A stretch of DNA of 64,000 nucleotides from NCBI GenBank assembly GCA_965637545.1, contig OZ281498.1:6944001-7008000 (forward strand). Reading direction: 5' to 3'. Position numbers and translations under genes: made by a program. Within the stretch, counting starts at the first letter, position 1. Each line of letters begins with the position of its first letter. The stretch comes from Phallusia mammillata (Eukaryota). Under the pieces are notes generated by a model. That model worked only from the letters and a program-made list of their open reading frames with translations. It searched no databases and had not been told where the DNA came from. Below, one piece after another: positions 26,868 through 60,487 of the stretch.

Positions 26868-29800
26868 TTAGTTAATACTTGCTGAAAAAATAGAAACACG
26901 ACACTTCGGTTTTCTGCACTTGATTTTGCAATGTGCCAAATACCGATTCATTGGCGTCGGGTTGATTTTAACCTCTTGCGCTGGTGAGAAAAACATAGCG
27001 ACACTAAATAGTCACCGCGAATCGGTATTTGCTTTCCGCGACTTTGCATGTTACAATTAATGTGGTACAGTTACGATCTTTTTACCTGCTATTAGGTTTA
27101 GAACTTGTTTTTCACAGCGACAGAAGTAGCGAAGTGTGCGTTTTTTCTCGTGAGATTTTTTTGATCAATCTAAAGATGCCTGGGTAATTTTGTTGTACTG
27201 TTTAACACTTACCAACACATAAAGGTATAGGAAGAACCTCATTGCCCGCAGTGGACCGACATGAATTGACGGGGGTTCCAACCAGTATATGACCATCTTC
27301 ACAGGCGTAGGTAAAAGAAGTGCCCACATTGTATTCCGTTTGTGCCCTCGGCTCAATGTATCCATTTACGGGGCTTTGCGGGGTACATGTGCTATCTGCC
27401 GCAACCGGTGCCACAGTCGCTGCTGAATAAGAATGTTTAGTTTCTAAACGGTTTCAAGCCAAACCTAAAAATTGCAGGTCTGTTTTGAGACTTCTTTCAT
27501 AGTATTTAAGCGTATTTTTGTCTATCCAATTGCAAAATAATTTATCAATCTTTGAAGGATCTGTTTTAGATATGATAAATATGACTTAACTTATTTCTTA
27601 ATTTTATTATTTTCTTTTGGTTGGTTGTGGCGCTTCTTAGAAAAATCCCAAATAGTTGTAGTTCGCTAATGTTTATTGCATACTTCAAAGTATTTCTTAC
27701 CAATGACGCCCTCTTTTGCCATTACGGATACAGTCTTACTTACCCTCGCACGTTGCGACTTCAACAGCCACTGTGCCATCCAATAAGCACACATTAAGGC
27801 CCAATCCTTTACGCACATAACCTTCGTCGCAGGCCACGCTGAACGGAACACCGACTTCAAATTGTGTTACATCTTTTGGCACAAAATGACCGTTTATGGG
27901 TGGAGTCGGTGTGCATGTGGGCAAAGGTGGTTCTGTGGGCTCTTCAGCTGCTGAGAAAATAGCTGAATACTTTAGCGATACAGTTATTGTTATGTTATTT
28001 AGAAAGCGATCTTAGATTATTCGGATCCTGAAACATACAAATCCAAAACAGAATTTTCGAATTCACTTTAACTCTTTCACATGTTCTTGTTGTCGATCAA
28101 ACACAACGATTGTGCGATAAGAACAGACGCGCAGACATACTTTGTATTTATTTGTGATGAGAAGCAGTCACATTAACTTAGAAAAAAAAAACGAAAAGAA
28201 AACTTGTGCAAAAACAGAACTGGATTCGGTGTTTCGGATTCAAAGCAAGTAAACTAGAACAATTCTAGAAAAGCAAATTGTTCTACATTGCCCATCATTA
28301 TAGGTGCAGTAAATTAGTGTTTGCAAATTAGACCCTGAAGCGTTTTACATGCTGTTCCCTTCTTGATAGCTCATTTCTTTAAGGGTACAAACAATACCCA
28401 TTCTTCAATATATCAAATCATAAGGTGCACATTGAAGCGATTATGGACTTGCCTTACCCAAATAATTTCTTGGTTATGCGAGTTGGCAAGACGTCCCTTT
28501 CATGCGTAAATTTGTATATAAACAAAAATTCTGACCACCTACGTTCACATTGTGGTGTTTCACCAAAAATGACACCTCCGCTTTGACACAGCCTCGTTCC
28601 TGCGTTGGCCAACGAGAAATTTTCGAAACACACGACAACGATCAGTTCGCCTTCTTGCCACTCTGTTTTGTCGACGGGTTCGATTCTTCCATTTGCAGGC
28701 ACCGTAGGGTTAGTGCACGTGTTCGGGTTTGGAGGTGGAAGAAGCTCTGCGAAGTATAAACGTTTGTTTGCAAAAATAATTGATACAGAAAAAATGACTG
28801 CATTTATCAGCACAAAAGCGCGTAGCAAATTTCCTGAAGCAATATGCCATTTGTACTGAGAATTCCTGACCTATGTTTTCTTATCAGCTGAAATCTTTGA
28901 TGCGTTTGCGACTAGTCATCATGGAAAGGTTACGTAAGACAAAGTTCGTTTTGATGTTCGTTAAAAAAACGCGTATCCACTAAATTTATTTTACTGTTTT
29001 TAAAAACTTTTTTTTTCGGTCCTCTGTACACAAATAAAAGACAGTAAAGACAAAAGAAAATTAGACTTACGGCAGGACTGTGTGCCCGTACTGAAAAAGC
29101 CGCTGGATTGACAAACAGGAGGTGTAGGACCTACAAGCTGATATCCTGTCACACAGCCCAACTGTACTGCCTCTCCAACTGTATACGAGCTTTGAAGATT
29201 TACTACAAAACCGTTTGCGGGCGCCGCTGGGTTAGAGCAGGTCACCGATATAATTGGCGGATTTGTAACAATTTCTGCGGAAATATAATTGATTTTAGTT
29301 ATCAGTCATCAGTATTAACAACACATGGTATGAAGCAATAAAGTGTTTTAAGGCAGTTCAATTTGGCTTACTTAAAGTGACACAGTGAGTCGTTTATTGC
29401 GGTTTTTGTAACTTGTAATATAAATGATAATCAAAGTATTCGTACACTTGCATGACACCAGATCATTATTTTGCCCAAAGCAAGGTTTTTATTTGTGGAA
29501 TGAAACAGAAATTGTGTTTTAAAATTCAGGTTGTCGGTAACACATTCACGTTCTGGTACATTCCACAACTGACAGTGCTTTGCAGCATTGTTCCAAGGGG
29601 CGTCATCGTCCAGCAACTTGGTTTCAAAGTGTGTGTTTTTTAAGTAGTGTATAAAACAGCGGGTTTAAATGTGCCATGCATGTTAGATTGCTTTTTGGCG
29701 TCTGAACCTATTTAAAACTAAATACATACGAGCGCATTGCACATTTCCTGAGCTAAAAATCCCATTATTCTGACAGACTGAAGGCAATTGACCAACAAGC

Positions 29801-32800
29801 TGGTATCCGCTGGCACAGCCAATTTGAACAGCCTCACCAACAACGTACCCCCCTCGGTTATTTGTGACAAAACCGTTTGCTGGTGCTGTTGGGTTTGAGC
29901 ATGTAACTGCTACATTACGATTTGTTGCGGTTGCTGTAACAAAATGTTGTGTCATATTCTTTTATGATCGTGTGACAACTGAAATTTTAGAGTAGTCGGT
30001 TGAACATTTAATAATTTCGGCTGGTAAAGATTTTTACTTGTGCAATCACAAAGTGAGCAGCAAGTTAAATCTGGTTGTATTTTTATTTCAGAACTTTGAG
30101 TTGTTGTTTACATTAAAGTTTATTTCAAGGAGTGTTAAAGGCGATGGTGTTTTGAACATACGACTTATACTTCACCAAATATTGTTCTCTCAGAGATTTG
30201 ACTACAGACTAGCTAAAAATTAGCTTTATCTTGGTTTGTGTGCAACCAACTAAACATAGGTTTGTAAGCATGTAATGCTTACTGGTGTGGTCACAATACG
30301 TATGTGTTATTTTCTTGCTGGAAAGGTTGAAAAATGTGTATGGTTTGACGTTTATGATGGGGTATAAACATTGTTGGTTTACTCTTAAGTACTCATGACT
30401 CTGCAGATAAAAATGCAGAACTGATTTTTCCATTTTTATTTCACTTTAAAATTAATGGGTTGTGTTTGACATAAAAATGTTTGATCTTTGTGTGATATTT
30501 GGAATTTGCACAAGCATTATTTTTAAGTTGTCGTGGTAATCAACTCTTGTGAAACCAAAATTAACACTTAATGCAATTGCAGGAAAAAATCTTGACTATT
30601 GTTAAAGCAAAATCTTCAGGACCAGAAAAAAACTTGAAAAATAAGGAACTTGACCTACTGCTGTACATATTACGTCCGTTAAAAGTACCTTGTATCAGTG
30701 CGTTTTGGTTATTTATTATCGTCTAACAACTTGATTTCAAAGTTTATGGTTTCTTTCTAGGCAGACTAATGTATAAAGCTGCTCGTTTAAATGTGTCATA
30801 TACATAGTATATCGAACTGTTTTCGTTTCGGTAACTGAAGCAAAATTTAAAAAAACAAATACGTACGAGCGCATTGCACGTTTCCGGAGCTAAAAAGCCC
30901 ATTATTCTGACAGACTACAGGAACTTGACCAACCAGCTGGTATCCACTGTTACATGATACTTGAACAGCCTCACCAACAACGTACGTCCCTCTGTTGTTT
31001 GTAACGACACCGTTTGCTGGTGTTGTTGGGTTTGAGCAGGACACTGCTACTGGTGGTGGTTGCGTTGTTAATACTGCGAAAAAAGCTTGCCTTAAGGTTT
31101 TCACTATTACAGGAATGCGTGTAAAGACGAGTTCAATACAAATGTGTGCAGAGAAAAATGCATTGCGCAAACTTGTAATTGACATTTTATATGAGACATT
31201 GCAATGAACATGATTACTGTTTGCCTTTATGTGGTTTAATCTGAAGTGGTTTGTGGAGATTTGTGAAAATTTTGTGGCTGTTCAAATTAGGTAGGCTACT
31301 TGTTGCGTTACATACGCTGAGTAATCCAAATACAGGACCTTAAAATATGCTTACTATGAATACTTACAAACACATTGAACATTTCCTGCGCTAAAAAATC
31401 CATTATTCTGACAGACTGCAGGAACTTGACCAACCAGCTGGTATCCACTGTTACATGATACTTGAACATCCTCACCAACAACGTACGATCCTCTGTTGTT
31501 TGTAACAAAACCATTTTGTGGCGAAGTCGGGTTTGAGCAAGTTACTCCAACTGGTGGTTGTGTTGCTGCGAAAATACATCGGTTTAGGTCTTAACCTAAT
31601 TTATCTGATTCGGTGCATCACTATTTTGTATGTTTCACTATATTTTGCATGTCAGCAGACTACGCCAAAACTCGCGGATCAGGGCGAATGCTTCGTTCAA
31701 TGGTTAGAGAAGTTTAATCAATACATAGGAACAAAGAACTTTTGATACTCACCAATGCATTGCACATTTCCAGAGCTGAAAGAACCGTCAGCCTGACAGA
31801 CTGGTGGCGTTTGTCCCACAATTTCATATCCACTAACACACACAATCTGCACAGCTTGCCTAACTACGTACGTGCCTTGATTACTTGCGACGAAACCGTT
31901 TGCTGGTGCCCCTGGGTTAGAGCAGGTCGCAGCTACCGGAGATGGTTCGGCGCCTATAACGTACGGAAAGCGAGTTTATAGAGAATACTTGCAAACAGAG
32001 CCTGTTAAACATTATCTAACGAAATAATAAGGCTCCAAATATCATTGTTAAATTTGTCAACATTTTTTCAACGTGTGAATGCTTTATTGTGTAACTTGGC
32101 CTGGCCTTTAACTTGCATCTACAGATTTAATGTTTTCTTCTGTAATCAAGGTTTAGTCTCATAATAGAGTATGTTGTTGGCATGTGTTTCAACGCCTTTG
32201 CCAGCAAAAGGCTTTCACTTGCCGATGCAGTATGGAAATGGATGGTTGTATCTCCCGTTGCTTTGACATCTAAGTTGTGATTCTCCAAATATCCTTAAGC
32301 CAGTGGCGCACGAATATTGGACTGTTTCTCCCGGGTTTAGTTCTCGCATATTGGCGGGAGTCACAGTCCCACCAGCTATAACCATAGTCCCACCAGCTAT
32401 AGCCACTGGTACACTGCACCTCTGTGGAGCTGCAAAGCGGTTACATAACAACGTTAAACTCAAATATTGATGTTTTCATACATGTTCAAAAACGACAAAC
32501 AACATTTTTAGTCGCTTTTCAAATTTGCATTTTAATGTTATTTTTATAGAGCTACAAAAGTAATGGTAAAGCCGCTGCCTTAAACTTAGAGAATCCAAAC
32601 TTCATCCGAAAGTAGTTTGAATACTTTATTCAGATCAAAGCTTAAAATTTTCATTTTGCAGACTGGACTGCAAAAAAACACATACAAATTAATAAAAATG
32701 TAATGTCGCAAATCTGCTAATACTATTAAGCTTTTAAAAATGCTTTTACTTCCGCAAAATGGTGGTGCGTTGCTGTACTCTCCGTTGTTCTGACAAACCG

Positions 32801-35800
32801 CCGAGCTGCTGCCGCTCAATGGAAACCCTGCGTTGCAGCTGTAAGTCACTCGATCTCCTTCTCTCCATACTTGTCTTGCCTCGTTCACTCTTCCATTGAG
32901 TGGGGCAACCGGTGAAGGACAAGTTGCCCTCACGACCACTTGAATTACTTCATAATATAAAATGTTTGGGATTTAATTTGTGAATTAAAAGTCGCGTTAC
33001 TCTCGTTCGACAAACCTATGGCTGCACATAGTGCTGTTGCCAGGCATAATCCACAAACTGTTATTTTGATTAACCGGCAATTATATTTGAAATATCATTG
33101 ATACCTATTTGATCTGTAATGCGTTTGCTAGTGCTGCAAGTATATTAAAACTTTCTTCGTAATTTTATTCATTTTGTTTCGTCCTTTTTTTGAAATCCAC
33201 ACAAAAATATAAGAAGTGAACTCATGGATACCAATGTTTGTAAATTGCGTTTGCATTATTAAAAAAACTAGACTTCTTACATGTGCAGCTTGGGTTGTGT
33301 GCTGTGAATGTTCCGCTAGCAGTGCAGGTGGCTGTGCTACTTCCTGACAATCGGTATCCGTTGTTGCATTGGAAACCAACACTTGCGCCGACATTCCATG
33401 CTGTGGTTCCGACCGGCAGAGATATTCCGTTTGCTGGCGTAAGAGGACCAGTGCATTGGACTGGTGCAATGTTCCCTGTGGATCCAAAAGTAATCGAGAA
33501 AGTGCTTATTTAACTCTAAACACAGCAAGACCACAACACGGAACGTGAAAAAGATTTGGGAGTTGGAATATTCCAAACTGGGGCCATATATAAAGTAATA
33601 TTTACGCTTGTATGATTAAAACAAAATTGAGAGTTTTTCAAATAAAATAAATAACTAATGATAATAATTTATGTACATTAAGTACCTTCACACCATGGCG
33701 TTTTTTGTCAAGATCTCCAAGAAATCCCGTTTTTATTTCGTGCATACACGGTAATTACCACGAATTATAGGGATTGGGAAATGTTACCCTCTGGATTTCC
33801 AGTAAATTGTTAACAATTGTATGAGCCGATTATAATGTTGTTTTGCGGTTTTCTTGAATTTGGTCTAAAAATACTAATTTTCAAACGGCACACTGTTTGA
33901 AAAGTGGCAAAGGAGTTGCATAAGTTGGACTATTTAGTGTGTGTGCGGTGTGACAATCCCTCCAGCTATAGACACTGGTGAACAGCTCCTCTGCGGGGCT
34001 GCAAAACGATTAGAAAAATACACTTCTTCAAAACAACCTTAGACTTGAACATATTGATGTTGTCATACACTTTCAAAAACAACAAACAACATTTTGCGGA
34101 CTCTTTTCATTTTCACTGTTCATTGTCTTTTCGTTCCAGGTAAAACAGTAAGGACTATTCAGTGTGCGTGACAGCGCAAAAAAATTCTAGCTCACATTTG
34201 TTTGATTCATCTTTACTTTGTTGTTTTTATGGTTTCTCAGCAACGGCATGCTGCTGCTTTTGGCTTTTGGCCAGTCTCCGATTTTCACTCACGAATGCCC
34301 CGGGGTTAAACGAAATTTTTTTTTTGGCTGTTTATACAACCCAACATTTTGCTCAGCAATTTGCGTGCTTGAATTTTAAATTCTTTGCGTTGTGCTACTC
34401 GACATTTGTGACAAAAAACAACAACAGAAATTGCTGTTGTTTTCTTAGCAAGGTAAATTTGGTATAATACGCAATTTAATATAGGCATTATAGGTTTTTC
34501 GTTCTTTGATAAGTCTTAATCCCGAGTTTGTACCACCACCAAAACCCTCTATACCAGCGGTTCCCAAACTGGGGTCCGCGGTCCTTTAGGGGTCCGTGAG
34601 GCAATTTTGGTGGGACCGCAAGGCGGGTAAAGTAATTCTATAATCTTATTTAGCGTCAGTTTGTGCCACTGAATGAGTTTAAATCAAGAGAATTGAGAAA
34701 TCGACTGTCTCCATTGCTAAACAATAGCCTTTATTAAATGACAACTATCAAAAATGCAATTGTTCGCGCACAATCGTACTGCTTTTTTTCTTGTCTTTAA
34801 TGTCACAAGCTGTGTTTAGAATTTAGATCATTATTATGCGCAATTTTGCATAACTAGCGAAAATCCTGCAATCAACTTTCGTTTTTCTAAAATACACATT
34901 CCAGCTTATGGACCGCGAGCCCTCGAAATAATGGCAAAGGGACCGTTTTGACAAAATAATGAAAAAGTTTGGGAACCACTGCTCTGTACGCTTTTTTTAC
35001 TGGGATCTTTGATAAATGAAGATTGATATACATCTTTTAAGTTCTTTCAAGTTTGTTTATTTTAATCATTCTATTCAGTAAATGTTTGATGTTTTGAAGT
35101 TTTTTGCTCATCAATGAGGTATAGATCTATGTAATGCCACATTGTTCAAAAAGCTAGAATTCGTTTGTGCTGGCTGCGGGATATTACTCGAATGAATTAG
35201 CTAAAAAAGTAAATATTTATTAATGACTCACGTCGACAAATTGGAATAGCGGTGGAAAATTGTCCATTTGATGCGCATGCTGAAAGACGTTGCCCATCCA
35301 ATGAGTAATCTCCGGGACATCCAAATGCGATGGATTCTCCCACTGCCCAGACCGCTTTGCCAGCAGGCAATGTAACCAGATTGTCTCCAGTTGGTCGCTG
35401 ACAAACAGTGGGTTCCACAGGTACTGATGGTATGAACGTTGGCATGGCTGCAAAAGTGAAATTGGTTTTGAACTGAGCAAAATTTGGAGAGGACTTTTCA
35501 AAAACGTTTTCGGCAGACAACTTTTAAAGATTTCGAGGATGGTTGTAGAAAATGTTCTAAAGAACTTCGAATAAAACGGTTTACTGTGATGAATGTTGAA
35601 TTAACAAATTTTGAACTTTGTAAAATATTTTATTGACTATTTACATAAACCGCCTTCGTTTGGATTTATATATATGAGCCGCCTCCGCTCAAAAACCACT
35701 TATCTTGTGGCGATTAACGATCGATCAGAGTTGTCGGCCTCGTCAGGGTTACACAAATGTTTAGAAGCAAAAGTTCGTACAGAATTGTTTTTTTTTATAC

Positions 35801-38773
35801 GTTTACTGTTTGTTAATCATGTTATATTATAAACATTGTCAAAAGTTTCATAACGTTTCAGCGTTTATGTCACCAGAAAGCCCCATTAACATGTCAATAA
35901 AGTTTGTTTTTAATATAAACAAAAGTTTGACGGAGCCTCGTCCTGGGGCATAATTTGAACGTTTACAGAAACGCTTTTTCTACCCTGTAACCTTCGTCGC
36001 CTTCGTGTACTTAACATTGCCTCTGGCCAGGTTATCCTTTTTCGCAGGTGTCGCACACACCCTGCTCTTAAACGAACCTTTCTCGATTATAATTATGTGC
36101 TTTACTTCTGTGATATGAAATTTGCACCTACAATGTGCAAAACTGACTGGTAATGTGCAACATGGTAACCAATGCGCTTCCGTTCTGCGAAATCATAACA
36201 CCCTGTAATTTTAAGTCATCATGTTGCCGCCATACTTCGTGTTTTTTTTACATTATGGGACAACAAAGTTCTGCGCGGGTATGTTTTTTGGTGCTGCGTC
36301 TCTTCTATTTCTTTCTACTTACCAATACATCGTCGTAATGAGAAGGACACAAAATATCCGGGATTGCAAATACATGCCGGTAGTTTGTAAACAGCGCACG
36401 CAGAGTTTGCAGGGCACGGCTGTTGTGTAGCGCACTGAGCTGGAGTTGCATCTGTAAGCAGGCTTCGGGCTAAAACAAAAAGCATATTGTTAAAAGTTAT
36501 TGTTTCCTAAATGAAACAAATACTAAAGAAAGGAAAATATTTTAAATCTCGTTTATTAAACGGTGTTGTTACTTTTTTACGATGTTGTACTAGAGATTTT
36601 TTTCATTTATTATGAGATATTTGGATGATTTCTTAAAACGCTGCGGTCAACTTTCCGCTTTACTATTTGGATGATTTCTTAAAACGCTGCGGTCAACTTT
36701 CCGCTTTACTATGATCACACCGCCAGAATGGGAAACCGAATTGCCCACTAAAATTAATTTGCATGATTCGCGATTTCATAGGAAGGTTTTGTGTACGACA
36801 CTTCCAATTATCCAATACTCACCTACGCACCCATCCGTCTGGTGCCTGAAGTAACCAGCGTTACAGGCGCAATAGTTTGTTCCCCCATATGTCACACATC
36901 TGCTATTATCTGCACAAGCGTTTACGGCGCAGTAAACCGCCACGCCTACATCTGGTGCTGGTAATACAGGACCAACCGTAGCGACTGGCCCCATTCCTCC
37001 CATCATAGGGTTATTGATACCTAAAAAATAGGCCGTAAAAATTAAAAGTTTGTTGCCATTAGCAAAATGTGTAAAGATCTAACAGCAGCAAAACACAAAC
37101 AACCAGCTAGAAACGAGGTGTATAACGCCTACGCATCTGAACACAGCCGCCTAATTGCACATTGTTAATAAACACATCACCGAAAAATGTTATTTGTTTT
37201 AATTGCGTCTTCTAGTTTGTCAACTGTATATGTTTTCTTTCCTTCTGTTTTGCACCTACCTAGCGCGCGAAATTGGTGCAAAGAATTGGTTGTACTTCCG
37301 GGCAGCATGTTTTTGAAAATAATGCATTATCACGCAAGGCATTTGGATACAAATGGCATTTGACCACAAAGTAGCAATTTTGCGTGAATTCATTTCCACA
37401 ATGTCCGCGAAATTCGTAGTTTTTAAATAGTGACACACCTGCTTCCTGACAAGCGTTAAACGATCAGCAATGTTTGTTTTCTCTGCATACGTGCACACGT
37501 TTTAGCCATGGAAGGTTTTTAAAAAATATTCTTACAGTCAAAATTGCCTATAAGCGTCAACGCCATGATATTGACCGACACATGCACTTTCTCCAACAAT
37601 TCGCCCCCGGCCAGGTTGACTTTTGCCCGATATCTTGCTATAAAATTGTGTTTAAAAAAGCTACTTTCGTTTCATACAACTGCACCATGGTGACCATACT
37701 CGCATTCTATCCATTTATGCATGTCTTTGTTACTGTTACTTCCAAAAACCCAGAAAAGTTACATACATGTTACTATCGTGTTACTGATGTGCAGCTTATA
37801 GTTACGTTATGAACATTAATAGTGATTCAGAAGTACATTTAAATTTTACAAGTACAAGTAAGGAACCATTTGCCATATAGAAGATAAGAAAAATATATTT
37901 GTTATAGCTCGAGTTAAAAATAACCAGGTTTGGTGTCACCAAATTTGTTATAACTATGGATCACAAACACGACGTTATTGTCTCGCATAATGCCGCAGAT
38001 CGCTAACTTCTGTCCACAAACTTTGGCTCTAAGTGTACAATAAATTATAAGCGAAAACTTTCCCCCGAACTTGTGTTTGGGCTAAGAGTATCTTTCATGA
38101 TGTCTTTAGCTTATGGCTTGTGATTTTATTAAACGCCTAACTACAGAAGTAAAAATATTACCGGGGTGGCGTTAGACTTTAATATAAAAAATGCTGCATG
38201 CGTTTAATTGTTGGTACATGTTCTTACGGACGCATCGCGGCCCGGATCTTGGATTCCGAATCGACCTCCAGTAGGTTCCAATGCACTCCAGTACGCTTTC
38301 TCCCAAGTTTTCATACCCATTGTTACAGGTTATTGTAATCCTGTCTCCCCTGTTGTATCTTTGAAGTGTGCCTGTAGGTTGGGGCGTGTAAACTGCATTC
38401 TGCACGAAATACGGTCTGTTGCAAAAAGCTGAAACAAAAAGCTGGTGTTGGTAATGAGCATGCGAGACCAATTGTTGGTATAATAGAAAACACGAAAGCC
38501 TATTTTCATTAACAAATTCACGAAACACGAAAGCTTAATTTATTCATCAAATGCTAGTTTATCCGATATACTTTCATTTCTCGAATCCACTTCTTAGTTA
38601 ATTTGACCTCCACTGGTGCCAAAACTGCAGTTACATCGAGTACAAAGGCTCGAAACTTACATTTTACAACCCTGATTACTTATTAGTGATTACTTATAAT
38701 ACTTACTTCGTAACTGTGCTTTTGTCAGCAAGATGAAACCTGCCAATGTCAAAACACCTAACAAGCGATTCAT
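26868..38773 (-). CDS. Gene D: secreted sushi/CCP-repeat protein (signal peptide, CCP, 2 EGF, 12 further CCP; about 1016 aa)
   Basis: Minus-strand exons: 38773-38707 (MNRLLGVLTLAGFILLTKAQLR, signal peptide); 38428-38228 CCP; 37020-36823 and 36451-36323 EGF; then CCP exons 35447-35232, 33475-33281, 32938-32750, 32429-32223 (GC donor), 31953-31753, 31565-31368, 31073-30867, 29933-29730, 29274-29071, 28746-28543, 27950-27744, 27422-27213; last exon 26881-26868 (ASIN*). All internal exons are phase 1-1 and multiples of 3. Each CCP has the C..P..NG...C..G(Y/F)...G...C...G.F...C pattern. No TM segment. Confidence 0.85.
33934..33998 (-). pseudogene. Truncated pseudo-exon, a duplicate of the 5' part of CCP exon 32429-32223
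   Basis: Acceptor ttttgcag, then APQRSCSPVSIAGGIVTPHTH* (compare AAPQRCSVPVAIAGGT...VTP). The upstream intron (34030-34100) also resembles 32452-32515. Confidence 0.75.
34555..34981. mobile_element. hAT (Buster-type) MITE in gene D intron
   Basis: TIR cagcggttcccaaact / agtttgggaaccactg. TSD ctctatac / ctctgtac (7/8). Confidence 0.9.
36618..36709. repeat. Perfect 46-bp tandem duplication (intronic)
   Basis: tatttggatgatttcttaaaacgctgcggtcaactttccgctttac occurs twice in tandem. Confidence 0.95.
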
Positions 38774-39847
38774 TTTGCCAATGCTAATTTGCCGACTTCT
38801 AAAAAACATACAATGTTATTGGTTTCAAAACAGTTGATGTATTCGCGTTGACGTCGGGTTGTAACTTTTTTCAATCTAAACTCCATTTGTCTCTATAAAA
38901 CATCGTTGTTGTGTTTTGTATTGAGCAAAGTGTTTACTTACATGAATCAGTGTTACAATCTACCTGAGCCTTGGGCTCTAAAAGCGTCCGACATCCATAT
39001 GTACCACGTACTCTTGACAAAATGTTGTTTTTCTGCATAAGCTAGGCCTGAAGCGGTTTGTGATTATTCTGCTTGTAATACATGAGCACATACAAGGACA
39101 TTGGATATACAAATCATTTTCTTGTATGACAGCACCTTTATTCTTTCCTGAGCTTGTATTTCTATATTATGTTTAAATAGTTTTGGCACTTTAAACTGAA
39201 TTCAACGACTTTAGCTTTTATCAATCTTATAAAGTATTGTACATCGATCTTTTCCCACATACTGAAGTTATGTCACTGCGCGCAATCTGCGCCATTTGAC
39301 TCGTTTGCTGCGATGGCGCGTAGTTCTCGGGGCGGCCACGTCTGCCCGAAGGCAGAACGCGAGGTTTAAATAGATTCCGTGTTTGTGATAGCAAGCCCCA
39401 ATCACAAACACTCATCTGACAAAAATCTTCCACTTCTGCAACTCAAAACCGGTTATTTGCGCAGGATACGAGTTTCAATTTTGGCCACTACGCAGGTTCT
39501 GCTGTCTGCAAAGTTGGGTCGAAGTTTGGCCTTGCGTTGATAGGTGTTTGTCGACAACAACGATGTAAACATGTCATTGGAAGTTGATTTTGAAATTTCC
39601 AAAAATTTTCAGTATGTTTTTGCTGTGAATTTTGGCTTCTTCTAATTAAATGTTTTAATTGTCGTTTGTAAGAATTACACATTGTTAATATGCCCCAATC
39701 GCACAACCACCGAGAATAAATTGTTTCTTGTTATCCAATAACTCTTGTTTTGCACAAATTTGAACAGCGTTGTTTGTTTTTTCGAGGTTGGTTGTTTTAG
39801 CTCTGCAAGAATAACAAGAAAACCGCTTTAGATATGTTATTCTAAAG

Positions 39848-40124
39848 CAGGGGTCGGCAATCCATGACACGCGTACCAAGATTGGCACGCGAGGGTGTTT
39901 TTCATGGCACGCCAACCGATTTGCGTGTTTATATTGAGTAACAATTCAACCAGTAACACTGCTTTTTTCAGTTTTCATTATGGCATTGTTTTAAATTCAA
40001 CCTTACATGTATAAAACACTCTGCTTTCTCGATAACTTATTATTGCAATCTGCTGGAGAGGTTAGTTAATACATAAAAATAACAAGTAAATTGGCACGCG
40101 TCGCCTAAAAGGTTCCGAGCCCTG
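39848..40124. mobile_element. hAT (Buster-type) MITE, family X copy 3 (opposite orientation)
   Basis: Ends caggggtcggcaa / ggttccgagccctg. Perfect TSD ttctaaag. The interior is the reverse complement of 15868-16180 and 17710-18020. Confidence 0.9.
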
Positions 40125-40728
40125 TTCTAAAGTATACCGCTTTCATAGCTTACGAGATTTAAAATTTCCTTTAAATATATACACTCGTTCGGTGTGTAAA
40201 CAATCTGCACTTGTCGTTGAAAGCATTCCTGCATCGTAAACTGTCGTTGAAAAAAACTCAACTTGGTTGCTTTATTGTTTTGTATTTATAGAATCACCGG
40301 GTAAATACTTGCATTAATTGGTTAACATGCAGCAAGCACTTTCTAATGTAGTTTCGCAGCTTATTACTAACGACAACAAGTTGATGCATCTTTTATTCTT
40401 GTTTGTTTTCTGTTATGAGCCTGCAAATATACAAAGCAATTTTAGCAAATTTTTCAAACGCTAAATACGTTTTTAAGTGAATGGATGGCATAAGAAATTA
40501 GATTTTCTAAGTTTTGCTGCACGCTTTTGAGACCTTTCAGGAAATGATATTGGGAATCCATATTACAAAAGACTACTTTTTGTCAGTTTTAGTATTCTTC
40601 AATCAGATTTCAGCGCCTATTTTGTACTATGGCGTGCTTGGTGACCTAAAATGTGGCAGATGTTATCGTCAAAATCGTTTGCGCAGAGAACGTTATCATT
40701 TCTAGCAAGGACCAATAGAAATCTGTAC

Positions 40729-49700: not shown

Positions 49701-52700
49701 CCTATTAACTTATATATCGAGCATCTAGGATTCTAGGATCAATAGTTAACTCAGAGTTGAGTTGTAAGAGTTGTAAGTTGGGCCTGGCTTTTCAGTTCGG
49801 GTTCGGCCAGGGTTTTAGACATGTACTTTCGGGTTCGGACCTCGATTTCTGGTCCGCCTACAACTCCGCTGCAAATTGCCTATTTTCATGAACATTATGA
49901 TTTACATATTATACCTGCGCAAAAAGTAGTATGTGGCGAAAATAATCCGGTACTGAGGCACCTCGCAGTCCTTACGCCTTGAAAGTTGAACCCAGGATTG
50001 CAAGCGAACGACACAACCTCATTAATTCGCCAAACAGTTGTGTTTCGGGGTATCGTGTAGCCATTCCTTGGTGTTTTGGGGTCAGTGCATAAAATTATTC
50101 CTGAAAAAATATATTTTACCTAAACAGCACAAGAGGATTCATATTGCACACTTTTCCAAATACACTCTTTACTTTTGGTGAACTCATTGAAAATGTAAAG
50201 TTTTTTGGTTAAATGCACAGAATTTTGTTCTGTGTTTTTGAGTTTTATCTGATATGTAACGTAATATATATGTTTGTCATGAAACAAGAGCACGTATTAA
50301 CAAAACATGTTCCTTCCTACGCCTGCATATGGGCGGTCGGTTGTCAAACTGTCCGTTGTTCTGACAAGTCGACGAAATTCTTCCAATCAGCTCGAATCCA
50401 TCATTACAGGTGTAAGTTACTTGAGTTCCAACTGGCCACTGTAAAAGGCTAATAACAATCCGACCGTTGACTGGAACTGTTGGGTTGCTGCAGGTTGCTG
50501 CTGCAAGTTTTAAGATTAATTAAAGTTTCAATTCAAATTTCGAAACTAAAAACCACCAGTTTCCACTTCCACTAAGCATTTAATTTGCTTCCAATTGTCT
50601 CAATTCATTCTCTAAACTGAAGCATGGATAATTTTCTTGATGTGGTAATTTGTTTGACTTTGTAGTCAGTCTGTTGAGTTGCGGTTTCAGTTTGTTATAA
50701 CTATAATTCGAGTATCATTTGTTTATCTCTCGATGTAAAGAAGGAAATAATACAAGTTTAACACAACAAAAACTAAGAAATTACAGTAATCCTGACCTGC
50801 AATGACAATAATTTTATGTTGTTGATTGTTGTTATTAACGGTTTTTGTTTAGACATATATTTAACTTTAATGCTGCTTTGTATTACTCTGCCACTGCTGC
50901 GTTTTGCCAAAACAATGGGGACTTACCAATACACGCTGGAGGAACGCTACTGAACTGTCCGTTACTCAAGCAAACTGCATTGCTGCTGCCCCTCAAAGTA
51001 AAACCATTGTTGCACATATAGACGATCTCTTCGTCTGTCTGCCACAAGATCTTCTCTCCCATTATTCCACCATTAGCCGGTTCCACAGGTCGTTCGCAAG
51101 CTGATACCACTGTTGGTTGTATTGATGACGTTAAAAGTATATTATGACAAGAACATGCTGGTTGATTTTTTTAATCAACCACACAGGCTATGTTTCCAAG
51201 CCCTTGTCGTCAGTTATGCTTTTGTTTTAGAAAACTTATAATACTTTGAATGACGAACAGGTGCGTTTTAAACTAGATATAGTGTTTCTCTTCTGGTCAT
51301 TCCTACCTGCACAAGATGGATTTTGTGTTGAAAATGATCCATTCCCTAAACATGTGGCACTTTCGAAACCCAGCAAGGTAAATCCGTCGTTGCAGACAAA
51401 GTTCACAACTTCTCCCACTCCCCACTCATTCTGACCGAGTGGTAAGGTTCTGCCATCCAATAGTGGTGTAATAGTACAAGTAACTCCTGTTTAAAAAACG
51501 TTTGATAAGTTATTTCTGGTTAGAAATACCATATTTTTATCACCAGAAAGGTGCCAGATTTTTGATGAAAAATGTCAACGACTACTTATGGGATCAAAGA
51601 AAATAAAACCTTATGATATTTGAATTTAACACTTTCTGAACATTTTTTTATGATTAAAATGCCCAATACCTCATACTTTCAGGTTTTGTGATCAAAAATG
51701 GTTCATCAAAATTTTATTTGCACTTTTACGCATATTTTGGAGGTTCGTTTCCGGATTTGTGTTGCAAATACTCGGTTTCCTCGGTATAAGAACTTACTAT
51801 TACACAATGGTGCTAGGCTGTTGAATTGTCCGTTGCTCTGGCAAACCACCACGCTGTCTCCATTCATCACAAATCCACTGTTACATGTAAATGTCAATCT
51901 CTCTCCTTGTCCCCATTGCAAGCGTTGTTCACTTATTCCTCCATTCATTGGCGCCGCAGGTCGACTGCACGTGACGGCTATGGCTAAAAGGATTTGAACG
52001 TAATCACATTCAATGTTTTGTTGTTTATATCTACTGTTGTGCAAGTATGTTACTGTTAGTTAACCGGCTGTTAGTAAAGTATGGTGGCTGTTAGTAAAGT
52101 ATTAGTATATGTTACTCTTAGTAAAGTATGGTGAAACGATTTTTTTCAATGCAACCTTTTGTGTGTTTTCACAAAAGACGCTTTTTTGTTTTTGCAATTG
52201 TTCACATTTTAATACTTTTTTTAACTCTTTGTTCTATGATCTTACCTCTACAACTGGGATTGTGTGATGTAAATATTCCGGTACTCAGACATCTTGCGCT
52301 ACTTGAACCAGTCAAAGAAAACCCAGGGTTACAAGTAAAGTTTACAATTTCGTTCAAACTCCAAACAGTTTTTTCTCGAGGCCAAGAAATTCCGTTCAAG
52401 GGTGTCGATGGATTTGTGCATTGCACTACTGTGGGTAAACAGAACGATTGTTGTTTGATTTCGTTATGATCGTATGCAATCCTAACTAAATGCAGAAATT
52501 TGTCATGATTTCTTATGATTTATTTATGGCATCTGACAAAATAGTTGCTTTTTTGTAAAAAGTACTCACTATTACACATGGGAGCCATATTGCTAAATTG
52601 TCCGTTGCTTTGGCAAACCGCTACACTGTTTCCGCGCATTACAAATCCGCTGTTGCATGTAAAAGTCAATCTTTCTCCTATACGCCATTGTAAGCGTTGT

Positions 52701-55700
52701 TCAGTTATTCCTCCATTGATTGGCGCCGCAGGTCGATTGCACGTGATTGCTATGATTAGAAAAAGTAAATACATTAACTGTATTATTATTACTTGGCTCC
52801 TTAATTGTTGTACAAGGATGTTGTCAAATACTATACGTGAACAAGACCTTTTTTGTATGTCTACAAATAGACGCATTTTATTTGATTTCCTTGCTCACAC
52901 TTTTAAACTCTTTGATTTTTGATCTCACCTGTACAACTGGGATTGTGTGATGTAAATATTCCGGTACTCAGACATCTTGCGCTACTTGAACCAGTCAAAG
53001 AAAACCCAGGGTTGCAAGTAAAGTTTACAATCTCGTTCAAACTCCAAACAGTCTTTCCTCGAGGCCATGATATTCCATTTACAGGAGTGGTTGGATTTGT
53101 ACATTGTACGACTGTGTGTGAACAAAACCTTTGTTGTTTTGTTTAAATGTAAAACGTTAAATGACAAGCCGTCTAATTAGACTAATAATTATAATATTTA
53201 CGATTTTTTAACGTATGATTATATCAAACTCAACTCAACTATGGTGATTTGAAAGTCTGTGTCATATATGCTGAATGATCAGTGCATCGTTTACCTTTAA
53301 GACTTTCGGTTTGTACTTACTGTTGCACATGGGTGCTATGCTGCTGAACTGTCCGTTTCCAAGGCAAACTGTCACACTGTTTCCAGTCATCGTAAATCCA
53401 CTGTTACATGTAAACGTCAAACTTTCTCCTACTTGCCATTGTAAGCGTCGTTCAGTTATTCCTCCATTGATAGGCGCAGCTGGTCGATTGCAGGATATCG
53501 ATATAGCTAGAAAATATTTTGAAGGAATTAACAGAAGTGTGATAAATAATACTACTATTTATAATACATGTCAAATGCATTAATTACAAACGCTTGTGTG
53601 ATCAAACGTCTTGTTTGACCCCACCGCTTTAAAACTGTATCTATTTTCAAACCTGTGCAACTGGGATTGTGTGATGTGAAGAATCCAGTATTTTGACATC
53701 TTGCGCTACTCGATCCGGTCAAACTAAACCCGACGTTGCAAGTAAAGTTTACAATTTCGTTCAAACTCCAAACAGTCTTTCCTCGAGGCCATGATATTCC
53801 ATTTACAGGAGTGGATGGATTTGTACATTGTACTACTGTTTGCAAAAAACTTTGTTGTTTCCTTAAATTGCAAACGCTTGACTATGGAACTGTATGATAA
53901 ACCAGTTACTGTGTTGTTGATAATTTTCCAACACTTCGTTGACTAAAAGAATCGCGTCTATTGAATGTAGCCTGATCTTGAACTGAATCACGAAACGCAT
54001 TTTATCAGCTTGTCATAACACTTTACTCACAAAAACGACTAGTTTGTTTACTTTTATTTTAAACAGTAACTTACTGTTGCACATGGGTGCCATGCTACTG
54101 AACTGTCCGTTGTTCAGGCAAACTGCAACACTGTTTCCAGTCATTGCAAATCCTATGTTGCATGTAAACGTTAAACTTTCTCCCACTTGCCATTGCGAGC
54201 GTTGTTCAGATATCTGTCCATTGATGGGAGCCTCAGGACGGTTGCAGGTTGCAGTTATGACTAGAAAAGATATTTGGATGGATCAAAGATTACTGTAGTC
54301 CATGATGCTGCTTAGTTGATGCGTGTTACATTATTTGGGAAATTCTAACAATCCGTCAAGCAACGTTATAAAGTTACAAAAATATACCGTTTGGTGGGTT
54401 AAATTGAATATTTGTGTTAAACTATTTAACTATGATCTCACCTATACATCTAGGATTGTGTGGTGTGAATAATCCAGTACTCAGACATCTGGCATTATTC
54501 AAACCAGTTAAAGTAAACCCGGCATTGCAAGTGAAGTTCACAATTTCGTTTATATTCCACACAGTTTTTCCTCGAGGCCATGAAATTCCATTTGATGGAG
54601 TGGATGGATTTGTACATTGCACTTGTCCTGTTGGTAAACGATGCATTAACCAAAAGCATCCTTAATTCATATGCCTGCTGATACAGGCAGGTTTTCTTGT
54701 TTCTACTTCTCGATAATGTATTGGCAAATACTTACTATTACACAATGGCGCTGGGCTGCTGAACTGTCCGTTGTTCTGGCAAACTACAACACTGTTTCCA
54801 TTTATTACAAATCCACTGTTACATGCAAACGTCAATCTTTCTCCTATTCGCCATTGCAAGCGTTGTTCAGTTATTCCTCCATTAATTGGCGCCACAGGTC
54901 GATTGCAGGTTACAAATATCGCTGCTATTAAGACATGATATTGTAAGACAAATTTAATTGTACACTTAATTTTAAAACTGTACAGAAATATTGCCATTTG
55001 TTTGCCTCTAACTTCTTTAAACGTTTTAAATTTATACTACGTTCTCACCTGTACATATAGGGTTATGCGATGTAAATAATCCGGTATTCAGACATCTTGC
55101 ACTACTGGAACCAACTAAGGTAAACCCGGCGTTGCAAGTAAAGTTCACAATTTCGTTGAAACCCCAAACAGACTTTCCTCGAGGCCATGAAGTTCCATTC
55201 AATGGTGTGGAAGGATTTGTGCATTGCACTACTCCTGTTTGTAAACAAAATTTGGAAAAAAATTACAAAGCAGTCTGGCTTATATTCAGTGTCCCTGTCA
55301 ACTCTGCATGGTTTTCACAACCTCCTATTATTTTGCTTGGTCACAAATTACCAAAAAAATATTTTTTCAAGATTGAAAAAGCCAATATCGGTACTGTGTT
55401 TTAAAATGGATCCAATGTGAAAACGTCTGTCGCTTACTTCTACGGTTTTTTTGTAGTATTTCATCCCTTGCGATTAAAACATTTTGTCTTGTTAAGTGGT
55501 CTTTATTTTTACGAGCAGTGAACATTTCACCCTTAAAACTGATCCATGCTTTCTAAATTCAACTTTTTTGTCTTTATTATATCAATGAATACTGATTTCA
55601 ACTTTTACTAGTAATTTTGCTCACTCGAACACGTTGGGGCCTGTCCGGAAAACAATCCGTTCCGGCATTCTATCAGATTGGTTCCTGTCATCATAAATCC

Positions 55701-58700
55701 TATGTTGCAGGCAAACACCACGACGTTTGCGTTTTGGATAACGATTCTTCCGTTAAGTGGTGCAGTGAATTGAGAACATGTCGTCGTCATCACTGCAAGG
55801 TAGTAAAGATTTACTACGACTACGCCAGGTTGAAAGCACCCAATCTAGTTAGATGTTTGAAGTTAAGCTAAAAATACTAGGTGTTGTCCTCATTAAAAAA
55901 GGCATTAATAATTAACTTACCTCGGAACAGGGACATTAGCCTATAAAAGTAGGTACTTTTTTAATTTTTGATCTACTTATGTATCCTTATTGAAACATAA
56001 GCTAAAAAGTTATGACGTTTTAAGCCTACTAGTCCATAACATGAATATCTTAGCTGTACTTTCTTCTTATCGACATGATATTAATAACATCGCTTACTTG
56101 AGCATGTTGGCGGACCGTTACTGAACTCTCCATTGCCTAGGCAAACGGCCATACTTCTTCCAGTCACCGTATATCCAGCGTTGCAAGCGTACATCACTAT
56201 ATCCCCTAACATCCATCTTTCCGAGGGGTTTTCAAGTATTCCGTTGGGTGGCGCTAAGGGTGCTTGACAAGTAGAATCTACAGCTGTAAAGTATTTACCG
56301 TTACCTGAGAGACCTTTGTATATTTGAACTGGCGCTATTTTATTTTTGTGTTTTTTACGGTTTGTATATCCAAACAGAGGCAGCTAGTTTTGTCCTATGT
56401 GGGCTAGTTATGATTGGGGTTGATGAAACAGTACCTCGCGTAGCTTCCATAGGTTTTGAGCAAGGCTTGTGTCCACTGTTTAATCGTTAGTTTTAAAACT
56501 TAACCGATTTGCATTACAGTTAGTCTGGTTTCATTTATGTTTGATAATTAATTGGTCCAGAGAAAAAACTAAAAAAGAGTTTCACAACAGTTTTTGTTAC
56601 AACGCAAACTAATTGTATATCTGTGAAAATATTTACACATAACAATTAACTTATTGGTTGCGTTGTGAATAATGATATTGCTACCTCTGCAAGTGGGATT
56701 ATGTTCAGTAAAAACTCCATCTTCCTGGCATGTCGCACTGCTTTCTCCTTGCAGAATTAATCCATTGTCACAAACAAAGAACACACGTTCATTGACGGCC
56801 CATTCGGTTTGACCAGATGGCAGGACAATCACATTCTCTGAGATTGATAGATTGGTACACGAAACACTTGAAGGTTGATCAGCTGGAAAAGTATTTGTAA
56901 TAACTACCTCAATATAATCACTTAATGCCACTCTGGTATATTTATATTTGATTTTGATTCGACACTGAACGTTTTGTATATTCATCACATTCACTTCCGA
57001 AAAATAAATATATTGCGGCAAAACTTCAAAGCACAACTGTTCGTGTTTTAGTGGTATAGCTACAAGGGTCTTTGAAATACCTCGCTGGTAATAAAAGCTT
57101 GCCAGTCTTTCTTTTAAATACAGTTAAAGGCATTTATAAATCAAACTGAGTGTAAGTTTCTAAACGAAGACAATTTACCTTGTTTCACTTGACACACTGG
57201 AACAGAACCAAATGTTCCCGATGCAGTGCAGACAGAAGTATTTTGTCCTACAAGGTTGTAGCCTTCAGCACATGCATATCCTATTGCCTCCCTTTCCATC
57301 CATTCCGACTTTTCAGCGGGAAATAGAAGAAGGTTTTCGCCGATAGGTTTAGGACAAATTGCCTCTGGCATAGCTACAAAAGAGAAAATAACTTTTAACC
57401 TACCAAGTGTACATTAACATTGCACTTGACTAATGCGCCGCGCCATGATACACAAACACGTTATGTATTGCAATAAACCAGTTGGTATTGCATAATTCGT
57501 ATAGATCTGTATGTTTCAAACTTGTATTATATTTCAAGATTACGATAATTGCAAGGTAGGCCTATTCACCCATAGTTGCATTGCTGAACTTGTGTTGAGC
57601 ATTACATCATCCACAAACTTATGTACTAAAATTGGAGTACATGTAGTTGTATTTGCATTACGCAAGGATGGACGTCCAATTCATTGCGTTTTGGAATTTA
57701 TTTAGGGGCATTGTCTTCATAGAAAAAATTCTACTGGGCCATATTTGATTGATTAGCTGCAACCTTTTGACAGTGTTATCCAATATTTTCTGTTCTCGGA
57801 CCATTATTGAATCAGAATATCCATTCGTGCATTTGTTGATATTGTTTTTTATGAGAGTAGTATGGCGTTGAAAAGGTTTTTCTCACGACTCACAAAAAAC
57901 AGTTTATGAACACACGTGAGTCTACGAACTCAGGTTTAAGAAACACAACCATATTGGGTCGGCTTTCAGCGCTAATCTTTTTTGTTCTAACAGATGCTCT
58001 AACGGATTTTTTCCTGTACATGTAATCGCGTTGTGGTAAGATTGCAGCTTTGCTTCAAATGTATCGCTTTAAAACTGGGTACCAAACGTGTTACTTTTTA
58101 AAGCACCTGGTTTATTTGTGGTTGGACTCATTGGCGTAGCCAGGCCAGGGGTCACCTCCTCCAAAAAAATTTAAACTGCTCATTTTTGGTTCAATATCTT
58201 GGTGTTTTAAACTGACTGTGAACTGTGTGCCGCGACACACCAGTGTGCCGTGAGAGATTTCAAAGTGTTCTGCAAAATATTTTCTATTTCATAGTGCAGA
58301 CATTCCCTGGTGTTTAGGGATTGACTTTATGACAAAGTACTGGTGTGCATGACAACGCTTCAAAGCTCATATTTTTTGTGTTGGTGATGAAAAGCATCCT
58401 TACCCACCGCAATAAAGTTGAAAATTAACATTCTGTGAACAACGTTTGTTTTATGTTTGCCTGCGTGTGCCGCGGCTGGGAATTTTAGTTCTTATTGCGC
58501 CGCGTGCTTAAAAGGTTTGAGAACCACTATACACACACGTATATATATATGACACAACCGTTTTACGTTCTTTCCAAAAAATGATTGTCCCTCTTCCAAA
58601 ATTGGTTTTAGCTACGCCATTTCAAGTGTAATGGATAGCATTTTGTTGGATATTTTTCACCAAAGCTTTTGCATTTTCTACAAATCCACATAACTCGACC

Positions 58701-60487
58701 AGATGCTGACGCTACGCGATATTTCACTTTCACTTACCGATACATTGCCGCAAAGGCAGAAATAGAAAATAGCTGTCTTGACAAATACAGGCGACCCTTC
58801 TGTATGTAAGACACTGGGAGTTGAGCGGGCAATTAAGTGCAGCACAATCGCCAAAAGAAGCTGGAGTAAGTCTCGTACGTTCTGTTAAAATGCATAAATT
58901 GAAACAAACATTAGGGGCTTGACTAATTCAATTAACTACTTTAGTTTTTATCAATTTGTGGTCTACAGTTTTCGGTTAATTCCTTTTTTTCTTAGACTCC
59001 TCACATTAAGTACTTTGCTTTTGCACAAAACACCACTTTAAGACGATCGATCATTTTTTTCGTTTATCCCCCGATCTTATGTTTCAAATACAGCTTTGAC
59101 GGAAAAGTATTTGCTCTCACCCCAAACTTACCGACACAACCATCTGCAGGGTGTGTGAAAAATCCAGGGTTACAAACACATATATCTTGTCGTTGGTATG
59201 ACACGCAGTGACTGTTTCGCTCACAGTTTTTTGTGCATCTCGTCGCGACGTTAATGGAGGGCTGGATATCTAAAAATATTTTGATTTGTAAACTGTTGGC
59301 TGAAATACGTGTAATGGCCCCGAGATGTTAGTGTGAAGCCACAATCCCAGTTTACGAACAAAAAATGCACTGTACCGGCATAGCAGCAAACGCTGAAAAT
59401 TTTCTGTAAAAATCTTTGTCAAACAAATATAATTTTTTTGGAATATACTCCAAACTGATGATATGAATACAGCTTACATAAAAGCGGATTTGACGGTAGT
59501 ATACGAATGTAGACTATATAATGCACCATAATTAGTTTTTCCTGTTTAACGTACTTAGACATCTCGGCGTGGTTCCTCCTTCCACCGTCCATATACCATC
59601 ACCACAAACAGCTACACTACCTCCGACACTTTTGTAGCCTGCGTTGCAGATAAAAGTTATGTTGTCACCTGCGTTGTACCTCTCCCTGGAGAGTGGTGGG
59701 TCAGGGATGTAAATTGCATTCAGTATCCCCGGAGGACGGTAACAGAAGTCTGTATTTGGAAAAAAGGATAAGGTATTGTATACTTGCACACTTCTACTAG
59801 TTTTCACGGATTCTGTGTCTTTAGTTGTGCTCCTGCTGAGATGACAGCGGACATAAACGCCAACCTGAAACTCATTTTTTTACAGAACAAACAGCAAACT
59901 TTGTGAACCGTTGTGAGTACGTATAAATTTTATGTTAACAATTTTTTTTAAATATTTTTTTTAGTTTATCAATTTGAAAAGATACAAGCAATGGGCCGTA
60001 CTTTGTTGAAGTACTTTCAAGTACCTTATATATCACCGTTTATTAACACAAATTAATTGGCAACTAATATTAATAATGGTAAAGTAATGCTGACTTCGCC
60101 AGGCAACAGTTGAATTGGAAAAAAAGAATTAGCGATGAGCAAACCTAACAAATATTTGTTTTGTCAAAGAACAAGTATTTAGAAAGCACCGCTTCGCCAC
60201 TGGTAGCAATGTCATTATACAACGAAAAGCAGTGACAGCACCAAAAAAGACTCTAAAAAATTTTTTGTAAGCTGCAAAAACTTCACTGTTTTGCAGTTTT
60301 TTACTCGGTTTATAATAGTTACCAACATGCAAAATATTTTTATATTTTACATGTCATCTTATATTCAGTATATTTGTCTCCAATTGACGTCCACGGAAAA
60401 CTCACCAACAGGTTGCTGTTGTCCGTCAACCACGAGAGTTACGCTTGTCAGTGTTAGACAGCAAAACAACCACTTTGAGTGAACCAT
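40729..60487 (-). CDS. Gene B: giant secreted sushi/CCP-repeat protein (signal peptide, CCP, 2 EGF, 36 further CCP; about 2460 aa)
   Basis: Minus-strand exons: 60487-60406 (MVHSKWLFCCLTLTSVTLVVDG, signal peptide); 59749-59555 CCP; 59269-59132 and 58881-58738 EGF; then CCP exons 57373-57179, 56882-56685, 56283-56098, 55792-55625, 55234-55049, 54924-54736, 54627-54442, 54260-54075, 53835-53653, 53506-53321, 53111-52929, 52749-52570, 52428-52246, 51983-51798, 51486-51307, 51109-50927, 50500-50321, 50100-49915, 49543-49358, 49035-48856, 48795-48610, 48310-48125, 47734-47549, 47263-47078, 46802-46599, 46082-45897, 45792-45580, 45248-45066, 44611-44417, 43793-43608, 43430-43245, 42980-42780, 42515-42318, 41972-41766, 41520-41290, 40928-40729 (PPTCK*; alternatively spliced at 40733 to 40420-40393, KLITENKQE*). 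All internal exons are phase 1-1. No TM segment. Confidence 0.82.
44139..44374. repeat. 118-bp tandem duplication (intronic)
   Basis: Units 44139-44256 and 44257-44374 are near-identical; two substitutions were seen. Confidence 0.95.
51798..55234 (-). repeat. Five recent tandem copies of a two-exon (two-CCP) unit within gene B
   Basis: Alternating exons QCTNP(S/T)TP.NG.SWPR.K.VW..NEIVNFTC and TC.RP.AP.NGGI.EQR.QW..GERLTF.C recur with a period of about 0.6-0.8 kb. Nucleotide sequences are near-identical (for example 53111-52929 vs 52428-52246) and parts of the introns are similar. Confidence 0.9.
58129..58622. mobile_element. Degenerate MITE (tggcgtagc ends) with a nested partial hAT MITE
   Basis: Inverted pair cattggcgtagc / gctacgccattt without a matching TSD. 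The interior carries ccgcgacacaccagtgtgcc...aaaaggtttgagaaccact, a hAT-like right end only. Confidence 0.45.

Follow-up and report, generated by a model that had tools for sequence, protein, structure and literature searches.

A probable tandem cluster of ascidian-specific secreted mosaic proteins with CCP and EGF-like modules in Phallusia mammillata

Two long genes, here called B and D, follow one another on the minus strand of a 64,000-nucleotide stretch of the Phallusia mammillata genome (assembly GCA_965637545.1, contig OZ281498.1, positions 6,944,001 to 7,008,000; this whole stretch is the window, and positions are counted from its first letter unless the contig is named). Both encode chains of complement control protein (CCP, sushi) modules, and the locus raises the question of what kind of proteins these are and how one of them came to have 37 CCPs. 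It is likely that B and D belong to one tandem cluster of ascidian-specific secreted mosaic proteins, in which a signal peptide is followed by a canonical CCP, two epidermal growth factor (EGF)-like modules and a chain of CCPs of fixed positional types. The family is real, undescribed and lineage-specific, and it is a variant of the familiar theme of secreted multi-CCP proteins rather than a surprise.

The window is AT-rich eukaryotic DNA with a GC content of 0.30-0.42. A four-cysteine scan together with a hidden Markov model (HMM) built from the exons detected 53 CCP modules in it, all on the minus strand (E 1e-13 to 1e-26), and zero modules on the plus strand or between 1 and 26 kb. Gene B has 37 of them, the number given in the initial annotation of this DNA, and gene D 13, and the four cysteines are kept in all 50. 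Nine of ten representative pieces passed Pfam Sushi (PF00084), scoring 24-45 bits where the cut-off is 20.7; the K class, a divergent CCP, stays under it at 15.5 bits. The conserved tryptophan between Cys3 and Cys4 is found only in the first CCP of the head (GIW, TYW), and modules of the N, R, S, G and K classes have Phe, Tyr or Ile at this site and a Trp earlier in the module. The CCPs are variant ones, and the fold itself is not in doubt. Each exon holds one CCP module and nearly all exons are of phase 1-1, a typical one having its phase-1 acceptor 5-35 nt ahead of Cys1 and its phase-1 GT donor 4 nt past Cys4. Such regularity goes far beyond what chance would give. As every module is a phase-1/phase-1 exon, the reading frame survives the duplication of any exon or exon pair.

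The initial annotation regarded B and D as paralogs sharing a head (signal peptide, CCP, EGF, EGF, CCP) and an exon grammar, and the head exons and phase-1 chains found here bear this out. In B, exon 1 (60407-60487; ATG at 60487) encodes a signal peptide beginning MVHSKWLFCCLTLTSVTLVV and ends in TTG before the phase-1 donor GTGAGT; in D, the corresponding exon (38708-38773; ATG at 38773) encodes MNRLLGVLTLAGFILLTKAQ and ends in GAA before the phase-1 donor GTAAGT. Directly after the signal peptide, the first CCP of both genes carries the motif YNxGD.IT..C, which reads YNAGDNITFIC in B. The B head continues on the minus strand from this CCP1 (class head1, 59555-59749, canonical Trp retained) through a first EGF-like exon (59132-59269, six cysteines, phase 1-1) and a second one (58738-58860, ACICQDSYFLFLPLRQC, six cysteines) to CCP2 (class head2, 57179-57373). 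The D head spans 35232-38428 on the same strand, with CCP1 at 38228-38428, EGF1 at 36823-36957, EGF2 at 36323-36469 and CCP2 at 35232-35447.

The proposed homology of the second EGFs agrees with the 44% identity of these exons between B and D (E 4.7e-7). The spacing C-x3-5-C-x5-C-x8-C-x-C-x12-C is present in all six EGF-like modules of B, D and a third gene, paralog P, which is described below. A profile of nine modules matches solved EGF repeats of NELL1 (E 4.9e-6) and those of CD97/EMR2 (E 0.007-0.17), and Pfam EGF families match weakly, under their cut-offs. It is the cysteine spacing, these sub-cut-off Pfam matches and the NELL1 and CD97/EMR2 profile matches that lead to the assignment as EGF-like. 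A PDB sequence search with the EGF pair of P alone gave no real match, and ESM Atlas look-alikes were generic, with scores below 0.9. Frame scans of the B and D introns found no exons for other domains, and no CUB domain was matched by Pfam in the tested pieces or in the public family proteins. Lectin, CUB and VWA domains, said in the initial annotation to be missing from B, were not seen, Pfam returning Sushi and weak EGF only.

Gene B (40729-60487, minus strand) is predicted to have 40 exons and to encode about 2,430 amino acids, the head being followed by 35 CCPs and a stop. Its modules run in the order head, ten N-R pairs with two extra R (B05, B18), N-R-G-S twice, and X-Y-K-K-T. The alternating N and R exons B03-B26 occupy 46599-56882 (12 N and 14 R, counting the extra B05 and B18), and within them B06-B15 (51798-55234) form the youngest tandem block, with five N-R exon pairs at a period of about 0.7 kb. 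The two consecutive N-R-G-S tetrads (B25-B28 and B29-B32) lie at 43245-47263 and are followed by B33, a class X module with an inserted loop, and B34 of class Y (42318-42980), both with positional orthologs in paralog P, namely its X and Y exons. Two K-class exons, B35 and B36 (41290-41969), precede the terminal T-class CCP B37 (40735-40902, within a feature at 40729-40928), where the last cysteine is followed by one Lys and TAA, all on the minus strand. The intron between B21 and B22 (48796-48855) is only 60 nt long, in frame and stop-free, so that its retention would preserve the frame. Young intronic tandem duplications are seen in gene B at 44138-44381 (118 bp x 2.1, 96% identity) and in gene D at 36618-36712 (46 bp x 2.1, 100% identity).

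Gene D (27202-38773, minus strand) is predicted to have 16 exons encoding about 1,000 amino acids with 13 CCPs, in the order signal peptide-CCP-EGF-EGF-CCP-N-R-G-S-S-S-S-S-K-T-T, and a stop after VGKC. D03 (N), D04 (R) and D05 (G) lie at 32223-33475, the five S-class exons D06-D10 at 29071-31953, and D11 (K), D12 (T) and D13 (T) with the stop at 27202-28746, again on the minus strand. The module strings read in the initial annotation were partly right. For B it gave about eleven N-R pairs, N-R-G-S twice and K-K, of which the tetrads and K-K stand, the pairs number ten with two extra R, and X, Y and T were missed. For D, N-R-G-S-S-S-S-S-K is correct as far as it goes and lacks the T-T tail.

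Neither gene ends in a membrane anchor, as had been stated for B. The stop of B comes one Lys after the last cysteine, which is too short for a glycosylphosphatidylinositol (GPI) signal, and a downstream frame scan found no hydrophobic or transmembrane (TM)-like open frame from B37 to gene D; after D13 the same scan found no convincing one. A downstream membrane anchor was rejected on these grounds. The TAA stop of the terminal T exon lies, in B (40729-40734) and in P (contig positions 7017360-7017368), inside a perfect donor-like GTAAGT hexamer in phase 2. A splice donor once used here may have left this hexamer behind; no coding exon was found downstream of the embedded stop.

The exon classes were assigned by position before trees were built. 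In a tree of the 53 exons, S, K, G and both head classes each form one branch. When exons beyond the window were included (71 exons), N, K, S, G, head1, head2, X, Y and T each formed one branch, that is nine of ten classes, with 9 label changes, the minimum possible, against a mean of 47 in shuffled data (0 of 200 label shuffles as good). R, the tenth class, is paraphyletic, a backbone out of which G, Y and head1 branch; a single R clade, when forced, was borderline rejected (approximately unbiased test, p 0.043). The per-exon tree therefore returned four of the classes named in the initial annotation (N, S, G and K) and dissolved its R as a clade; X, Y and T had gone unnoticed there.

The trees and the DNA comparison also show where the genes have grown. 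In a self-comparison, the five N-R pairs at 51.8-55.2 kb align through both introns at 73-89% DNA identity, and the older N-R pairs of B are detectable at the protein level only. The repeat units differ by 11-27% in DNA, by which an assembly artefact was ruled out. The 71-exon tree contains clades within single genes, namely of the young N exons in B and of the S exons in D. Together with the N-R homology that extends through the introns, these clades indicate that a different module type was amplified in each gene. The N and R exon trees of the young B units are incongruent, which speaks for repeated unequal exchange or conversion instead of clean copying of dimers. The initial annotation had derived both genes from an ancestral N-R-G-S tetramer, amplified as N-R in B and as S in D; the module amplification is found again in the exon tree and the DNA self-alignment, and the view of the ancestral tetramer needs modifying. 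N-R-G-S is a core with one copy, present also in paralog P and, loosely, in the Clavelina relative described below; only in B was the whole tetramer doubled, on a single occasion. We infer head-N-R-G-S-X-Y-K-K-T as the ancestral layout, with its end a few residues past the last cysteine.

Within the repeats, the ratio of nonsynonymous to synonymous divergence (dN/dS) lies between 0.07 and 0.45; it averages 0.15 for N and 0.22 for R, and dS is about 0.6. The duplicated exons are under purifying selection, with neither decay nor diversifying selection, and the means of 0.15-0.22 argue for functional exons.

The cluster extends outside the window. When the head exons were compared with the rest of the same genome, a third head turned up 17 kb past the end of the window. 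It belongs to paralog P (OZ281498.1, 7017369-7025953, minus strand, 9-18 kb past the window), which has a signal peptide with a phase-1 donor as in B and D and reads signal peptide-CCP-EGF-EGF-CCP-N-N-R-G-S-X-Y-(S)-K-K-T. Between P and B lie two headless mini-genes or fragments with tail modules only. Gene A (62550-63678, minus strand) has a candidate signal-peptide exon and three K-class CCP exons; its last exon retains a donor, and a terminal exon was not found. Gene Q (OZ281498.1, 7010512-7012807, minus strand) has a candidate signal peptide followed by K-K, a broken Y fragment and K-K-T, ends in the same VS-stop as P and is 82% identical to the P tail over 1.2 kb. A stop directly after the terminal T exon is common to B, D, P and Q. 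The five members P, Q, A, B and D are all on the minus strand at 6.97-7.03 Mb of OZ281498.1, and no K or Y modules were found elsewhere in the 240-Mb genome.

D and P also share a tract of unusual likeness. The N-R exons and intron of D (32746-33528) are 90% identical to those of P (contig positions 7021518-7022286) over 784 bp, with a dS of 0.15-0.24, while the flanking exons have only 40-55% protein identity. The tract is one of gene conversion between paralogs 45 kb apart. A scrambled partial copy with 77-86% DNA identity is present on another contig (C6, 20203995-20217533), and it contains the D 3' flank, the D signal-peptide exon, EGF1, EGF2, CCP2 and pieces of the B-D spacer; CCP1 is absent. 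This copy is probably a dead dispersed duplicate. The B-D spacer itself holds, in neither gene, a dispersed repeat of about 300 bp (39848-40122, no strand assigned), with further copies at 15870-16181 and 17712-18021 and 74-77% identity between copies.

Relatives of B and D were sought with single exons and public protein entries as queries. Against 1.84 billion representative proteins, a K-class profile matched mostly proteins with many weak CCP matches; when 150 matches were re-scored with the class HMMs, two were picked out, CAB3266722.1 and a protein of Clavelina lepadiformis. CAB3266722.1 (UniRef A0A6F9DTG4, 939 aa, automatically named SVEP1) equals paralog P exon for exon, minus one CCP exon, by which the exon model and the secreted, Sushi-only architecture are validated. 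The skipped exon (OZ281498.1, 7018930-7019094) is intact with four cysteines and may be an alternative exon. Class by class, CAB3266722.1 is the best match of the B and D exons. The Clavelina protein (CAK8691394.1, 992 aa; XP_076804760.1, 984 aa) comes from a different ascidian order and has the same head and the order N-N-R-G-N-R-X-N-S-K; it is colinear with CAB3266722.1 from end to end at 34% identity. The layout is thus kept in two orders of ascidians. Sushi is the only Pfam family above cut-off in CAB3266722.1 (284.8 bits over 11 stretches) and in both Clavelina entries. Like B and D, these proteins consist of a signal peptide, CCP-EGF-EGF and a CCP chain of ordered classes (N, R, G, X, K) and end right after the last CCP, and B and D are placed in this ascidian family by the same head, ordered classes and ending. 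The public proteins differ in having 12 CCPs, against 37 in B and 13 in D, and are automatically named 'SVEP1(-like)' or unnamed.

B and D themselves have no entry in the protein collections searched. Apart from itself, CAB3266722.1 as a whole matched nothing in a word search but generic CCP proteins at 22-29% identity, and its head region (1-255) matched itself alone; the candidate lists of these searches were swamped by common CCP words and missed the Clavelina relative. No study of this architecture or of Phallusia sushi proteins was found in the literature. The architecture had been called an unrecognised one, which no longer holds, as it is already deposited, uncharacterised and under a wrong label, with the accessions above. 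The same is true of the suggestion that 37 CCPs are exceptional. Predicted proteins with 31-57 matched CCP stretches and no TM detected occur in Styela, Ciona, amphioxus, annelids and corals, among them Styela clava XP_077970683.1 (57 matched stretches), Ciona XP_026694042.1 (31) and Branchiostoma 'CR1' CAH1243596.1 (38). These very long chains lack the CCP-EGF-EGF head, and their class scores are 20-50 bits against 90-135 within the family; they therefore belong to other families.

Among characterised proteins, SVEP1 (polydom), after which family members were automatically named, is likewise large and secreted and mixes many CCPs with EGF modules, but it also has VWA, HYR, pentraxin and many Ca-binding EGF domains, none of which was found here by Pfam. 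In selectins and SUSD1, EGF modules adjoin a CCP chain, as is seen in atlas structure matches; however, selectins have an N-terminal C-type lectin domain and a TM segment, where CCP1 here follows the signal peptide directly and no TM-like frame is present, and SUSD1 has Ca-binding EGFs, an Fn3 domain and a TM segment that are not present here. CSMD proteins alternate CUB and sushi modules and have a TM, and neither a CUB match nor a TM segment is present in our genes. Drosophila Hikaru genki (Hig, which is among the ESM Atlas structure look-alikes) and Hasp and Caenorhabditis elegans LEV-9 are secreted, CCP-dominated, non-enzymatic matrix organisers, but they have Ig or WAP domains and no EGF pair, and their likeness to the family is seen at the level of domains. 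The regulators of complement activation (RCA; factor H, CR1, C4BP, DAF) are also chains of one-exon CCP modules, some of them secreted, and have expanded by tandem duplication of multi-CCP units such as the long homologous repeats of CR1. They consist of CCPs only, in contrast to the two EGF-like exons between CCP1 and CCP2 in B and D.

Several observations weigh against reading B and D as working members of such a family. Twelve same-species runs tentatively labelled as RNA contained 0.00 of the words of 50.6-60.6 kb, and the run-index search with these words found two DNA-type runs that carry them. Four tentatively RNA runs from four studies, compared with 38101-44100, matched only the dispersed repeat of the B-D spacer (39.9-40.1 kb), and the matching contigs continue into unrelated sequence. 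In the word searches, no public protein of 70-224 aa matched a B exon pair and none of 516-1,643 aa matched D. B05 is a shortened R module, and the phase-1 donor of D05 (G class) is GCAAGT (32217-32222), GC and not GT, which represents either a GC-AG intron or a weakened site. The AlphaFold model of the head is poor (mean pLDDT 56.9), and Foldseek with this model gave only generic multi-CCP chains at a TM-score of about 0.2, uninformative for the EGF pair. The function of the products we infer purely from the type of domain.

From such observations it could be argued that B is not a working 37-CCP gene at all and is an unexpressed or decaying exon array, or several transcription units read as one. 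It would fit this that neither an RNA contig nor a public protein fragment matches B, that the public protein set includes P and not B or D, and that the cluster sheds dead pieces, as the headless K-only fragments A and Q and the scrambled C6 copy show. Yet all 40 exons of B are open, all 37 CCPs have their four cysteines and the splice phases are uniform, and with dN/dS of 0.15-0.22 at a dS of about 0.6 the copies have been under purifying selection for a long time since their duplication. Scans with the CCP-HMM, with the EGF pattern and for open frames found no second head module, in-frame stop or terminal T exon inside B, the array not having been scanned for signal-peptide starts. As the available runs resemble small libraries of embryonic type, the lack of matches in them is a weak sign of silence, and we consider a non-working B unlikely.

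The products could also be humoral complement regulators of the factor H or C4BP kind, in which a few CCPs of B, D and P would bind C3b-type fragments and the rest would be spacer. In favour of this, the secreted CCP chains contain no further catalytic or anchoring domain, their generic nearest kin in the word and atlas searches include factor H, DAF and beta2-GPI, and ascidians have C3, Bf and MASP, with CCP regulators that are only putative (PMC5465252). What reviews say on this goes no further than 'various putative molecules with CCP domains' in Ciona, vCRL1, which is transmembrane, and an SCR cDNA of Botryllus. Against this, the likeness to factor H does not exceed 22-29%, a generic level that any CCP would give, the EGF pair is foreign to RCA proteins, the canonical Trp is replaced by Phe or Tyr in most modules, and dN/dS has no arms-race signature. 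We therefore regard a complement regulator of this kind as quite improbable. The hints at haemolymph, tunic and C3 binding in the initial annotation have nothing in the sequence behind them. EGF and CCP combinations are typical of adhesion and matrix proteins. Complement-fragment binding and a role as a matrix or cell-surface ligand of the SVEP1, selectin or Hikaru genki type may both be considered, the sequence favouring neither. A more specific proposal, which we give as a long shot, is that the five-gene cluster is the ascidian counterpart of an RCA locus, with soluble C3-fragment binders whose reach and valency would be adjusted as N-R or S exons are gained and lost in frame, N-R number perhaps varying between individuals as CR1 repeats do in humans.

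The tandem family of secreted mosaic proteins thus remains our preferred explanation of the locus, and its history is as follows. B reached its 37 CCPs chiefly because N-R exon pairs of about 0.7 kb were duplicated in tandem and exchanged again and again, with one additional N-R-G-S duplication. D was lengthened by S-exon monomers and lost X-Y, and D and P exchanged an N-R segment by gene conversion. The products would be extended, rod-like and multivalent extracellular binding proteins, soluble or matrix-bound and not membrane-anchored, and the copy number of N-R or S would set their length and valency.

Nothing is overturned by these genes, since multi-CCP giants and exon-shuffled CCP arrays are familiar and one family member was already deposited. 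The family is seen in ascidians only and has no studied member, so that the humoral CCP proteins still missing from the complement or matrix systems of tunicates could be among its products. Should B be expressed, it would show cleanly how in-frame tandem duplication of a two-exon unit can make a modular extracellular protein three times as long, and as intact short paralogs adjoin it, the cluster would offer a natural series for the effect of CCP chain length.

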